Source: Epithemia pelagica
Lineage: Eukaryota > Protista > Bacillariophyta
Direction of reading: 5' to 3'
Assembly: GCA_946965045.2 (NCBI GenBank)
Contig: OX337235.1
Coordinates: forward strand, 682,001 to 746,000
Length of the DNA stretch: 64,000 nt
How positions within the stretch are numbered: position 1 is the stretch's first letter; each line of letters starts with the position of its first letter. Positions 44,249 through 51,001 of this stretch are shown here, piece after piece. The notes under the pieces were generated by a model. That model saw only the letters and a list, made by a program, of their open reading frames with translations, was not told where the DNA came from and did not search any database. Made by a program: the position numbers and the translations under genes.

Positions 44249-45989
44249 TTAAACAATATCGGGAACCACACTGCGCTTGTTGGGTTTGGTAGTGGTATTC
44301 GTTCCACACGACGCGGTCGAACAGCACGTTTGTTCGAGCCGCGCCAGGGAGGCACTGCTGCTGCTGGTACAAAATCCCATGACTTCGTCCCGCACGGGCG
44401 TCGGAAAACAGGCTCCATGCACAAAGGGCGACAACCAATCGAGACGGAATTTGTTGGCCATGAGATTGTGGTGTCGTCGTCCCTTCTTGTTACTTCGGCC
44501 TTCTTTGGACAAACCAAACACTTCGGCCAGACCCGACAAGGATCCACCCACTTCAATTCCCTTGAGACGATCAATGTGCGTCATTTTATGCTGTACCACT
44601 TCCATTTGATCAACTGTTAACACAGAGCAAACACCACAAATGGACCAATCCGCAAGGCAAGCACAGGTCATGGTCAGTACACCAACCTGTCGGAAAAAGA
44701 CGTTACAAGATTGCCATTTTCGGCACCAAGAATGTTCACGTACACATCATACAGGAGGTAAAGATTCCAAACAAGAGCGATTCAATCAAGAGTAGTAGAA
44801 CTGTCAATAACTGAGAGGGATGATCGACGCACGAGGGGGGAGGACTATGCAAGGCTTCGGCGTGGACGGCCGCCGACGCATTGGCGGCTTGCATCGCATG
44901 GTCATAATGCCCATGTCGATGATACAAATGACTCCGGGAGGAATGGACACAGGAAGAAAATCGAAAAATGACGAGCAGCATGGAATAGGTGCAATTGACA
45001 AAGGTGTAAAAGACAAAGAGCAAAAAGTACTTGTGATTGCCAATGGCAACGCAATTGTTGACCCAGGGACAATGATGATCCATTTTGATAATGCATCGTT
45101 TGCAAATACTGCAATGATGCGCTCGCGGTGGTTTGAAGGCCTTGCAGCGACGACACAACCGCAAATTGCGTGGTTGCTTCCGTGTCAAGGGTACGTGATC
45201 CAAAAGGGCATCTTCTCCGTTGGTCCGACTGCCGGCATTGACAAAGGCATCTTCTTCGTCGGCGTCCTCGGGTTCCTCTTCCGGTAAGGGTTTGGCATCG
45301 GGTGGGACCGCACCTGGATTGGTCGTCATGGTTTTGAAATGACTGTAAATGGCCAATCCGGCAATGGACACAAACAAGGCTTCATGAAACAAGCCGACAC
45401 TGGTCAGGTGTCGGACCGATTCGCCCGTGGCTGTGACGAGCGTCACCGACATCCAGGGTGGTAACAACACCCACGTGACGGCATAGAGCGAATACAAATG
45501 CAAACTGTACGTAAAGGCCGCGCACAACAAACCGCAACAATCCAAATTCAACCACATGTAGTCAAAGGGTCCTGTACCAAACCAACGACGACGAACTGTG
45601 GCTCTCAAGACGGATTGTTCCTTGTGCAAATCTTCCATGACACGATTGCTCAAATCAATGGAAGACATGGGTCCGGACGACGACGATGTTGTCGTTGTTG
45701 TCAAGGTCGATCGGGACGCGGTCAAGGATCCAGAAAAACTGTGACTGGTACTGGCTTTTCGACTGTTTCGTGAAGTGGTATTTTTCGCGTGATGAGACGT
45801 ATGATTGCCCGAGGATGGAGCCGATTGGGTCGCCAACAAGGTCGTCGTTGCCGGAAGAATGGTCGGTGGTGACGACTGACTGGTGCTGCTGGTCCCTGTA
45901 GCAGCGGACGCACCGCCTGCCATGGGAGTTTTACGACGCTTGGTCGTTCCCACATTGGACGATGTCATGGCAGTGTCTTCCAGCATCAT
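44249..45989 (-). CDS. DHHC protein S-acyltransferase; exons 45989-44744 and 44613-44249
   Basis: CRRC..RAHHCSICKRCIIKMDHHCPWVNNC and four TM segments. Intron 44743-44614 (gtacgt..ttaacag) splices to SCMMFDQM..THIDRLK..EVFG..WLSPF. Confidence 0.9.
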
Positions 45990-47856
45990 GGTATGCAGTG
46001 CAATCGAACCAAACCAACCACAACAACAACAGTTGGTACTTGTACGAATGACAAGAACCTCATTGTGCTTGTGTGTCGGCACGAAGTACTATTTTGTTTA
46101 CAGTCCAAAAAACGTGACACAATTAAGACTGTTCGGCTCAAATGGAAGGATTAAAATGTAAGGGTCGGATCGGAGATAAGCACATAGATCGAATCGTCTT
46201 TTGATGCTCTTTCAGATAAGCCCCTATATGTCTTCTGAAATAAAGATATACATTTCTGAATATTTGGTTAAAGTTTGCCCAACGAAATTCTAGTATTGAA
46301 AACCCTAATGGGGTTTGTGTGGCACAGGTGAAGGAAGACTACGTGAGTCGCGCGCGTGAATGACCTTAGGGGTACGAGCCGCGCGCAACCCAAAAACTTT
46401 GGAGCGCGATAGCTCGAGAGAGGGATTTTTGGAAAATCCTGCCATTTGAACAGAACAGTCTTAATTAGGAATGCTGGTGGCTACCGATGCTACCCGGACC
46501 ATGAGAGTTTCGAGAAGAACCATGATGGGAGTGTCCGCAGTCCTGTCTCTAGGAAGAGCGACGAAACAGAGAATCATGTCGCTTCCCAATTCTCATGGGT
46601 GCCATTTTTACTCTAGGTAGACTGGTTCATCGTCTGTCAATCAACGAGGGTGCACAACCATTGTCTCTCGGGGGGCGTTTGGCCTACTTTTGTGTGGACG
46701 TGAGAACACCAATCTATACTTTTCCTAATTCCTAAGTAGACTTTGAAAACAAATACAGCTGCACCCCAACAAATGACGATGAAAATCCAAACATCCTCCA
46801 GTAGTCGTTGTCGATTGTCGACATTGCACCGCCCAACATTTTCGTATTGTATCTGTCCCATCCATGGCAGTGTCCCAAGGAGTGAACATAGAGCGTCCAG
46901 TCTCTTGCTTCGTCGTCCTGAAGGATGAGGCTGTGTTGTTGTCATTCGATAGAGCGAAACAAGCCTTTACCTCTTGTGTGCCCGCTGTCCTTTTCGCAAC
47001 TGTTCAGATGGCACATGGCAGTAGAGGCTCTAGAGAGTGGTACGAGGCGTAGTAGAGGTGTAATAGATAATAGTCGGAGAAGAGGATAGAGGATAGGCCA
47101 TGGCCAAGAGAATTGAAGGCCTACGGTCTACGGTATCGAAAATCGAAACACGGGATCGCTTATTATGGCGGTGGCTACCATAACTCGTCGTTTTCGCTAT
47201 CCGGAAGCTCGAAGATGTTCGACGCAACAATTCTCAGGACTCATGGAACGCTAGAAAGTGGTCAGTCGCCGTTGTTCCAACGGAACCTGTCCGCCGGCCC
47301 GTCTACTCTCTATCTGACACATTTTCTTACAGGAGAGTATTTCGTATTTCAGCCTCTCATTTGAGCCATGACATGTCTCATCTATTCTTCAACGGCCCAT
47401 CAAAATCAAAGCGGGATGATCAATAATCAATACCCAATACCGTAGACGAGCCACACAAGATAGAATCATCCATAATCTCATGTTCAAGGAGGACTTGATA
47501 ATTCCGATCTCCAATGGGACAAGCGAGCCAGTTAATCGAAAAACGTAAAATGTAAAATTATGGCGTGGCTGCTGTTTGAAGCCTGAAGCCCCAAGCCCCA
47601 AGTTGAACATTGAACAACACGACAAGGACTCGCCTCAACTCGGGGCACTTCCAATTTCCAAGCAAGACCCGTGCCAAGCGGCCGAGGCCATTCATGACTT
47701 TTCTTGATTGTTCGATGGATTGATGGAGAAATCTCTCTGCTGGTTTAGGTGTTAGGCGTCATCTCGTCCATTATTCTCACAACAAGCAAGAAGAAGAACT
47801 TGGTTGTTGTTGTCTTCCCAGTTCTTGCCCTTGGAAGAGGAAGCATTGTGTCGGCC

Positions 47857-49183
47857 ATGGAGTATGCAGAAGAGAAAGAGTTCACATCCTTCGAAGAGGA
47901 AACCACATCCGCTTCGGACGCGGAAGAATCTAGAATGTTGAACTCACTGGATGCTGGCACTGACGGTCTTGAAACATCACCACCAAGAAGTCTTTTGGGC
48001 CTGGAACAGCTCCGAGACCGAGCTCGTATGCATGTTCAAGAGGTAAGTCGTCCTTTGTTCCAACTGCTACATGCTTCCGCATTGAATATCGGCGGCTCAT
48101 GTTCTTTGTCACGTTCTCAACCTTTGATACTTGTAGTATATTCGGACCATACCGGCTGGACGCAAGTTGGCCTACATGGAAGCGGTGACCAAGGCACCCA
48201 ATCTGGTTGCGACCGAGACGGACGCGATGCAGTTTGTCCGTCACTGCAAGTACAATATTGCCGCGGCATCCGAACGACTCATCTTGTACTGGACGACACG
48301 GAAACAAGTCTTTGGTGCAAATGGAGCCTTTTTGCCTCTTTCCATGACTGGGTATGGGGCCTTGACGGAAAATGATGTTTTGCAACTCAAAGCAGGCTTT
48401 CCGGCGTGGTTGCCGAACACAACCGGTGGTCTTCATGTCGCCTACGCCGATCGTCGACAACACCTTCCAAGTTGCGATGCGGAAGCTCGTTTGCGATGTA
48501 CATTTTACTTGGCCCATTTGGCATCCAAAGATAGCCTGACTCAAACGGATGGAGTCTTGGTACTGGTGCTGTTGAACAATAAGCGAGTCATGGGGTTTGA
48601 TCTCGACTATGCGCGCAAAAGCTCACACCTACTCAGACATGTCTTACCCATCAAGTTTCGCCATCATATTCTGAATTTCATGCCAACCACCATGACACGG
48701 CGGTATACAGCTCAAAATATCATCACCAACTATCTTTCTGAGCTGTTGAACATCGGATTTGGTCCCTCCGATACACGTGTTCACTTTGAACGCGAAAATG
48801 GCCAGATTTTGAGGGAACTCATGGAGCTGGGTTTAACAAAAGAGGGCATACCAACCGATTTGGGTGGATCCTGGACCTTTGACATGTTTTCGGACTGGTG
48901 TCGCCAGCAAGTGGCGGCAGAGCGACTCGAATCTCTCCGAGCCGGCACGGGAATGTTCCCAGCAACCATGGCTTTTCCGGCCGACGAGCAATCGAGACTT
49001 ACACAAGTACGAATGACCAACGCCATTCATTCTCGTCGAAAACGCGATCGAAGACGGAACGAAGAGGCCGAGTTGAAAGAAGAACATGCAAAGCTGGAAG
49101 CTGAACATGCCTCATTGGAAGCCGAACACAAGAGGCTTCGAAACTTGCTCGAACAAGCAAACGAAGTGCTGGGCGAGATATAG
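47857..49183 (+). CDS. CRAL-TRIO-like domain fused to a C-terminal bZIP; exons 47857-48042 and 48137-49183 (410 aa)
   Basis: Phase-0 intron gtaagt..ttgtag. FVR..AASERLILYW..R..FG and IPTDLGG motifs. C-terminal N-x7-R-x9-L-x6-L-x6-L-x6-L. Confidence 0.8.
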
Positions 49184-49581
49184 GCCGGCTGCGATGATAG
49201 CAAACACACCTCAACTGCAGACTCGTAAGGAAATGTAACATTGTTTTTGCTTTTTTACAGGTAGCCCATTCCAAACGCTGACATGATACATGATGCTGGT
49301 AGATCAGCTATCAGCATTGCAAAATTACCTGACCGCAAAGCATCGGTAGAAAACCAAAGACGAGGATGTCGCTTTTGAGTCGCTCACATGAAAATGGTGA
49401 TTGTGGGAACCATGGCATGACATGACCCATCAACAAAAAAACAATTTAAGAGCAGATGTCCTTTGACACTGATATAAGTTCGCGTCTGCCCCAAGAAGGT
49501 GTATGGAGGATCTTTCAATGAAGCTCGTCTCGTCTTTCTGTTTCGCTGATTGCTTGCCCCACCATATCTTTGGTTGTGGAA

Positions 49582-51001
49582 ATGAATGCCTTTGCCATTC
49601 GACGCTGCCTTCTCAAGGGACCATTTGGACTTGTGCAGCCAGATTTTTATTCTTCTCCTGTATCGTTTGGACTTGAGAATGTTTCTCATTGGTTCTCGAA
49701 ACAAAGACGTTTTCTCAGCAGCTCTGCTCAGATTGACGATGATGATCCCGACGCTCCACTTCCGGGACCAGTTGTGCCTCCCGTTGATCGATGGAATCCT
49801 CGACAAGCAAAGCTTCTCTTTGCCCAGTTGAATGCTCTTCGAACACCCATAAACGAAAACAATATGACTCAAACGGAGGCATCGCTTGTCGGGTGCTTGA
49901 GGGAGGTATACAATCCTATACTAACTCCTGTCAAAAACGGCAAAAATCGAGAAACATTTTGGCTGCCGTTCCGAAATGCCGAAAAGAACATTTCACAATT
50001 CTTTGAAGAATGGCTTTATTACGCCCCGAAACCAGACGGAAACAAAACTCCCGGTCTCTATGCTGAAGAATGGGATTACCTGGCTAATACCAAGGAAGGT
50101 CTGAAACTCACCAATGAAAACGAGCCGTTCAAAAAGTGGTTTGTCGACTTTTTGTATCTTCGTGGCACATGGATTAAATCTAATCTCTCCTCAGCCTCCC
50201 TTAGGCAATGGATGGTATACCAAGGCGAAGCCGGACATCCATTCAATATTTCCGACTATATTGTTCCAGATCCAAAGGCTCCCGGTGGCGGCTTCAAGTC
50301 GTTTAACCAGTTCTTTTTGCGTTGAATCAAACAGGGCGTCAGACCACTTGGCAACGCCCCAATTGTATCGCCCTGCGATGGTGGTGCCTTTTACCTTGAA
50401 GAAGAGCTTAAGGTCCCATCTTGTGAAGACAATGGTAGCGATAAGAAACCAATCATCTTGCCACGCAAGTCAAACGATCCCTTTGACATGCGCTTCCCGG
50501 ATATGGTGATGCGTTTGTGGGTTGTCCACAATTGGACATTCTCTTGTGGTTTACAGACTACCATCATTTCAATTCCCCTGTCGAAGGGGAAGTGATTCAT
50601 GCATCGGAGTACAAAGGGTCTTACAACTACGACTTTGACGACTATAATCCAGATGATCCGCACGCTCCCCCTCCGTTGGAGGGGAGCGACAAGGTGGGTT
50701 TGTATCAGAACCTGGCCAAACACAAACGGTATGCCTGGATTATCAGGACACCAGATCTAGGCTTGGTTGCTATGATTGCCATTGGATTCTGGGATGTTGG
50801 ATCTATTATTCAGTTGCTAGAGTTGGGGACAAGCTCGAAAAGGGGCAGTACATGGGACACTTTGCCTACGGAGGATCCTCCATTGTCCTTGCTTTTGAAC
50901 CCGGCAAGAACGTAGAATTTAGTGTGGAAGGCAAGCCTCTTCTTGGCGCTGATCAACCCACCCTCATCAAGATTCGTCTGGATTTTGGTGGAACGAAATA
51001 A
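49582..51001 (+). pseudogene. Phosphatidylserine decarboxylase family pseudogene
   Basis: FNQFFLR*IK, IVSPCDG, DYHHFNSPVEG and GHFAYGGSSIV (pyruvoyl site). Lesions: TGA 50323-50325 and frameshifts near 50495 and 50815. Confidence 0.85.

Follow-up and report, generated by a model that had tools for sequence, protein, structure and literature searches.

The window, a stretch of 64 kb of the diatom Epithemia pelagica, contains on its + strand a gene coding for a CRAL-TRIO/Sec14-like domain followed by a bZIP-type tail, which extends from the start ATG through the stop codon over positions 47857-49183. It has two exons (47857-48042 and 48137-49183), the reading frame shifting partway, and a coding sequence of 1233 nt that translates into 410 aa. 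The initial annotation had placed a fused gene between exactly these limits, and this holds from ATG to stop, the 94-nt intron having gone unmentioned there. The features of the locus are given below; here and throughout, residue numbers of the domain, the linker, and the tail (e.g., Asn295, Leu313) count from the exon-2 product.

47471..47856, +: minimum 5′ untranslated region (an RNA-type contig from run X2 begins at 47471, with adapter letters before it)
47857..48042, +: coding part of exon 1, 62 aa (translation; the homologs P0002 and P0003 begin alike and align through the junction)
48043..48136, +: intron of 94 nt, GT..AG (GTAAGT...TTGTAG; seen in the sequence and absent from the X2 contig)
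48137..48943, +: CRAL-TRIO/Sec14-like domain, exon-2 residues 1-269 (profile, AlphaFold2, Foldseek, and Atlas searches)
48944..48985, +: short flexible linker, residues 270-283 (pLDDT <50 at 272-281)
48986..49072, +: basic region, residues 284-312 (conservation; alignment to GCN4)
49073..49183, +: leucine zipper and stop codon (heptad table; AlphaFold2 helix; Pfam scores of the excised tail)
49184..49696, +: 3′ untranslated region, as far as X2 contig 10 reaches (end of the RNA-type contig)

This locus is a real, expressed, and spliced diatom gene. The RNA-type contig of X2 (2158 nt, with adapter letters at its 5′ end) spans 47471-49696 and skips exactly the 94 intron bases (joint 48040->48135, cut +2); DNA-type contigs of X1, X3, and X4 keep them. 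Alignments with homologs show no gap across the exon junction, where MHVQE and YIRTIP meet here, versus MYVEE-YIRSMP in Epithemia. The start codon at 47857 is supported because no in-frame ATG lies between it and the preceding in-frame stop, itself found before 47749, and it is also backed by the two closest homologs, which have the same acidic (D/E)(F/Y)TSF(D/E)EE beginning. The existing public gene call at this place, in ENA assembly ERZ21939226 (contig ctg1336l, 1.03 Mb), is a truncated, prokaryote-style ORF of 279 aa (P0001) that carries no annotation. The 3′ untranslated region may extend into the gene that follows, although one contig covering both is no proof of a single transcript. There is no paralog of the gene within the 64-kb window, as tblastn of the protein matched only the gene itself.

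Two coding positions have another base in the contigs of X3 and X4 (sample S3) than in the window: 48233 (T>G, Phe to Val) and 48411 (T>G), where a family-invariant Leu becomes Trp; further differences lie in the intron, at 48061, 48064, and 48125. The window allele at 48233, at 48411, and at the intron sites is present in run X1 and in the RNA-type run X2, and the X3/X4 differences are probably strain or haplotype variation.

The next gene downstream, also on the + strand, is phosphatidylserine decarboxylase-like and consists of at least two ORF pieces (49582-50325 and about 50517-50915), the second of which matches PF02666 (E 3.2e-7, 30.7 bits). The position of a lipid-metabolism gene directly beside this one may be a coincidence. 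According to precomputed Pfam matches, the upstream neighbor (~45344-45989, − strand) is DHHC palmitoyltransferase-like, and a short-chain dehydrogenase (adh_short/KR) lies farther downstream, from ~51748 onward on the + strand.

The C-terminal tail of 65 residues fits the pattern N-x7-R-x9-L-x6-L-x6-L-x6-L, with Asn295 (49019-49021) and Arg303 at the signature positions. This match, which the initial annotation had already pointed out, is the only one of N-x7-[RK]-x9-L-(x6-L)3 in the six-frame translation of the 64-kb window, against a mean of 0.02 in residue shuffles. The family-invariant motif, S-R-R-K-R-D-R, stands after Asn295. The first zipper Leu begins nine residues past the signature Arg, and the heptads follow in register (Leu313, 320, 327, and 334, then Ala341); in the AlphaFold2 model, residues 284-347 form one unbroken helix. 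The basic region thus stands in fixed register with four to five Leu heptads. Three of the zipper "a" positions are occupied by the polar residue His, and in two heptads the Glu at g faces the Glu at the following e′ (heptad table).

The same annotation called this bZIP canonical, which is an overstatement. Canonical bZIPs (GCN4, CREB, Fos) have Ala and Ala at positions +3 and +4 from the Asn and Ser or Cys at +7, whereas this protein has His, Ser, and Lys at these base-contact positions, the family consensus being (H/Y/R), an invariant S, and an invariant K. The Pfam models also score below their gathering cut-offs: bZIP_2 reaches 11.6 bits in the whole protein and 17.7-18 bits in the excised tail (cut-off 22.3), and bZIP_1 reaches 8.8 and 13.3 bits, respectively (cut-off 27.6). 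Searches of Pfam, NCBIfam, and PDB with the single protein gave only weak or irrelevant matches. A word-index search restricted to the tail gave 30 candidates and, as its only match, the protein itself, with no independently annotated bZIP relative.

One might instead regard the protein as a Sec14-like lipid-transfer or membrane-signaling protein, in which the tail would be an oligomerizing coiled coil and the Arg/Lys cluster would bind acidic lipids or serve localization. Plant Sec14-nodulin proteins, with their polybasic, self-associating C-terminal module, provide a model for such an arrangement. The subthreshold Pfam scores of the protein and its noncanonical base-contact positions would fit this explanation, as would the presence of Asp in place of Asn at the signature position in about a third of the family (Asn 63 and Asp 31 among 103 sequences; Asn 16 and Asp 13 among 31 relatives, this gene having Asn). 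Two profile results also favor it. The smaller tail profiles give generic coiled coils (M protein, MreC, designed coils) about the same scores as bZIPs, and a profile of the basic region only (30 columns) has zero PDB matches at E <= 10.

However, a polybasic patch or an import signal needs neither an invariant Ser nor an indel-free register to the heptads. The initial annotation had named a basic region unconserved in orthologs as evidence against itself, and the opposite is found: S-R-x-K-R-x-R is invariant in 31 relatives that have 30-55% overall identity, and the spacing between this motif and the zipper is fixed, with zero indels in 29-31 relatives. The heptad leucines are conserved at ~90% or more among the 31 relatives, and the same conservation of the motif, with the same fixed spacing, is found in 66 tails from an exhaustive search (see following). 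The Pfam families matched by most tails are bZIP_1 and bZIP_2 (17 of 29 tails in one set and 34-35 of 66 in the other), and bZIP_Maf recurs. These models are both the commonest and the best Pfam matches, and they include the basic-region columns, which also speaks against a membrane protein with a mere coiled coil. The excised tails of P0144 (29.7 bits) and P0092 (28.0 bits) exceed the bZIP_1 cut-off of 27.6 in alignments that cover profile positions 5-58 of 64, basic region included. When the same two proteins are scanned whole, bZIP_1 has only 23.8 and 22.0 bits, and no tested relative passes a bZIP cut-off in whole-protein Pfam scans. Hence, the family lacks a bZIP annotation because whole-protein scans push the scores of the tail below the cut-off.

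The profile of the 66 tails argues against the membrane explanation as well, as its best natural match in PDB is the bZIP of GCN4 (E 1.3e-5), with basic region and zipper both aligned. The sole better match is a designed "origami" protein, one repeat of which closely resembles the GCN4 zipper. In the HMMER alignment to GCN4, the signature Asn and Arg fall on their GCN4 counterparts. Because the basic region alone matched no PDB entry, homology is supported by basic region and zipper taken jointly, together with the Pfam models. An alternative register, in which a shift of three places the invariant Ser-Arg on the canonical Ser/Cys-Arg, was rejected, since the heptad leucines are then no longer in phase and the match to the Asn is lost; the HMMER alignments to GCN4 and to bZIP_1 take the N-x7-R register and not the shifted one. 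As a structural type, the tail is thus well supported as a divergent bZIP subfamily. It is probably homologous to bZIPs, judging from these alignments, and DNA binding is predicted for it. The explanation as a lipid-transfer or membrane-signaling protein is accordingly considered unlikely.

The domain that precedes the tail is made up of an N-terminal helical subdomain, an α/β lipid-pocket fold ending in IPTDLGGSW, and a final helix. The IPTDLGG segment conforms to (I/L)P-x3-GG, with which CRAL-TRIO domains usually close, and one more helix follows it. With this protein alone, the Pfam model CRAL_TRIO_2 gives E 0.0079 and 17 bits versus a cut-off of 23 bits, nearly the whole profile being covered. 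Homology becomes clear at the level of the family: profile A3, built from 15 homologous domains, matches human CRALBP at E 1.6e-6, and P0048, a relative with three CRAL-TRIO-like domains, reaches 83.2 bits with CRAL_TRIO_2 against the same 23-bit cut-off. The AlphaFold2 model, made from an alignment of 16 sequences, is confident (mean pLDDT 88.9, pTM 0.82). When it is compared to PDB with Foldseek, all 49 matches at E <= 1e-3 are proteins of the Sec14 superfamily. The best is the α-tocopherol transfer protein (α-TTP, E 2.4e-8); α-TTP, CRALBP, and Sec14 span 2.4e-8 to 1e-4, and Sfh1-3, SEC14L, and AtSFH5 are further matches. In a shape search of the ESM Atlas, the best match is a diatom CRAL/TRIO cluster (TM 0.72, rmsd 2.6 Å over 254 residues). 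Language-model features also point to CRAL-TRIO, as a lead only. The complete CRAL-TRIO-like fold ending in IPTDLGG that the initial annotation described is therefore recovered by family profile, Foldseek, and Atlas alike. The assignment of exon-2 residues 1-269 to a complete CRAL-TRIO/Sec14 fold is solid, and this fold would contain a lipid pocket.

Exon 1 (62 aa) codes for an acidic N-terminus, with 13 Asp/Glu versus 2 Lys/Arg in the first 40 residues, and for the first part of the helical region that opens the domain (LEQLRDRARMHVQE). Judging from this acidic N-terminus and from the lack of a signal peptide, the 410-aa protein is predicted to be soluble. After the domain, about 10-15 residues of the linker are of low confidence in the AlphaFold2 model, with pLDDT <50 at residues 272-281; in relatives, the linker ranges from ~15 to ~130 residues and the segment is not alignable.

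The fusion of the two modules is stable among relatives. Word-index searches found 33 proteins, of which 31 contain the core motif; of the other two, P0027 has a tail of variant form that bZIP_1 matches weakly, and P0009 has another C-terminal module (see following). An exhaustive HMM search returned 3907 cluster representatives at E <= 1e-3; the number is 2074 with a limit of E <= 1e-10 and 884 with one of E <= 1e-30. Among the best 150 of this search, many are long proteins with 2-10 matched stretches, and 126 are new representatives, 89 of them with the core motif and 65 with the motif and four in-register heptads. In the long relatives, the tail typically comes after the last of several CRAL-TRIO-like domains. 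Members that have a name are, without exception, entered as "hypothetical protein" of Epithemia clementina, and the others come from ENA assemblies, JGI, and MMETSP transcriptomes; complete MMETSP ORFs of other species have both parts on one mRNA. The assembly that holds the window gene has a paralog (P0005) on a different contig, ctg1209l. The window gene is therefore one ordinary member of a very large unannotated family, with an expansion in this genome as well as in Epithemia.

The architecture of some relatives departs from that of the window gene. Many members (P0043-P0066 and others) have 900-1900 aa, with two to five or more CRAL-TRIO-like domains in tandem and a single bZIP-like tail. 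In the close relative P0009 (a Logan contig, 551 aa), the same CRAL-TRIO-like domain is present and DUF6824 (E 7.6e-9) replaces the bZIP tail; hence, the pocket domain is combined with more than one C-terminal module.

A second explanation accepts the bZIP factor and denies the gating. The CRAL-TRIO domain would then be a ligand-free pseudo-Sec14 scaffold that provides protein contacts, oligomerization, or stability. The divergence of the domain, which has just 17 bits with CRAL_TRIO_2 in this protein, and the strings of two to five or more such domains in many relatives are consistent with a scaffold. Against it, the complete, high-confidence fold superposes on ligand-bound structures of α-TTP, CRALBP, and Sec14, and the family as a whole has kept the canonical CRAL-TRIO sequence blocks, neither of these being proof of ligand binding. 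A scaffold without ligand gating is regarded as rather improbable. Finally, the truncated public call P0001 might suggest that the fusion is an artefact (neighboring genes read together, a pseudogene, or a misassembly), and this is effectively refuted, and extremely improbable, given the single uninterrupted frame once the confirmed intron is removed, the one RNA-type contig covering 47471-49696, and the same motif-bearing architecture in dozens of relatives, complete transcriptome ORFs included.

The reading that we prefer, with moderate confidence, is that this protein, with its predicted Sec14 fold and divergent bZIP, acts as a lipid-modulated transcription factor. The initial annotation had presented the fusion as a candidate ligand-sensing factor. 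Its domain architecture stands, on the basis of profiles, Pfam, structure prediction, and conservation, and canonical is too strong a word for the basic region. The gene is also not a singleton. In the proposed mechanism, the tail would dimerize through the zipper as a parallel coiled coil, and the basic helices would enter the major groove of DNA. The Arg/Lys cluster RRKRDRRR might double as a nuclear import signal, and the acidic N-terminus is perhaps an activation region. A hydrophobic ligand or a membrane lipid in the CRAL-TRIO pocket would modulate the factor, and how far the tail is available would depend on whether the pocket domain carries a lipid or is empty, and on whether it is bound to a membrane or free. 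Since the linker is flexible and of variable length, control by localization or availability (tethering versus nuclear entry, or masking of the tail) would be favored over rigid allostery. The His at "a" positions and the Glu g/e′ clashes would make for a weaker homodimer, which hints, speculatively, at pairing among paralogs.

The same reading may be extended to the family. Diatoms would then have a large family of bZIP factors gated by lipids or lipophilic ligands that standard annotation has missed, comprising sequence clusters in the hundreds and, in each genome, dozens of copies. This extension is put forward tentatively, and we regard it as possible but doubtful. If it were true, diatoms would have arrived independently, by way of Sec14/CRAL-TRIO, at a "nuclear-receptor-like" logic, and the various paralogs and tandem pockets could each turn a different signal (lipids, oxylipins, sterols, or pigment derivatives) directly into transcription.

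The closest comparison within stramenopiles is with other fusions of sensor domains and transcription factors. The published stramenopile-specific combinations are bZIP-LOV (the aureochromes) and bHLH-PAS (PMC4827209; PMC7670200), in agreement with the initial annotation, which had stated that the known sensor fusions use LOV or PAS. As in aureochromes (PMC7670200, PMC4827209), a stramenopile bZIP and a sensor domain, here a candidate one, of the small-molecule-binding type are part of one polypeptide. The differences are in the sensor, which is a flavin-binding LOV/PAS domain in aureochromes and CRAL-TRIO/Sec14 here; in the order of domains, as the sensor is N-terminal and the bZIP C-terminal here and the reverse holds in aureochromes; and in the basic region, which here, unlike in aureochromes, is that of a distinct subfamily with S-R-R-K-R-E-R as its core. 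The Pfam matches of this protein include no PAS or LOV family, even at E <= 10. No description of a CRAL-TRIO/Sec14 and bZIP fusion was found in the full-text literature, diatom literature included, coverage being incomplete and this being absence of evidence only.

A second comparison is with proteins of the same fold. The domain shares with Sec14, α-TTP, and CRALBP the fold, the sequence blocks, and the terminal (I/L)P-x3-GG motif. Known CRAL-TRIO proteins act in lipid transfer or presentation, alone or fused to GOLD, nodulin, RhoGEF/GAP, PTP, or MSP domains. The ESM Atlas listing includes the architectures of PTPN9 and MOSPD2, and there is no bZIP in the matched architectures of the CRAL-TRIO superfamily.

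Lipid-modulated regulators provide a third comparison. Animal nuclear receptors, plant START-HD-Zip factors, and yeast Opi1 would be the nearest functional analogs of the Sec14-bZIP protein, and they are not its homologs. In plants, HD-Zip III/IV factors combine a START lipid-transfer-type pocket with a homeodomain and a leucine zipper. They thus resemble this protein in having a hydrophobic-pocket domain joined to a DNA-binding domain and a zipper, and they differ in the pocket (START versus CRAL-TRIO), in the DNA-binding part (homeodomain-zipper versus bZIP), and in belonging to a separate lineage. Because both folds and lineages differ, the two arrangements would be convergent. By analogy, START-HD-Zip factors would be the nearest functional counterpart of a lipid-modulated factor outside animal nuclear receptors. 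Opi1 is a leucine-zipper regulator that is held at the ER by phosphatidic acid and becomes nuclear once this lipid falls. It may serve as a model for the way in which lipid binding would gate the protein studied here, to which it is not homologous, having no Sec14 fold and not being a bZIP.

The protein would thus join two known kinds, the sensor-domain bZIP and the lipid-pocket transcription factor, and the interest lies in the family rather than in the single gene. Diatoms are major primary producers, and little is known of the links from metabolic or chemical signals to their gene expression beyond aureochromes and a few other factors. A Sec14-pocket-bZIP family of such a size would be a large missing part of the diatom transcription-factor inventory, overlooked because neither domain reaches its Pfam cut-off when proteins are scanned whole. 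Through it, lipids or lipophilic infochemicals would act on transcription by a route that is open to direct tests. In addition, a CRAL-TRIO domain would for the first time be seen joined to a DNA-binding domain, in convergence with the START-HD-Zip factors of plants and the nuclear receptors of animals.

One short segment of the N-terminus may be singled out. The acidic tract contains the motif EFTSFEEE (window 47857-47905), which is conserved in the two closest Epithemia homologs. It could be an acidic activation motif or an FFAT-like motif for tethering to the ER, and it is put forward as a candidate lead.
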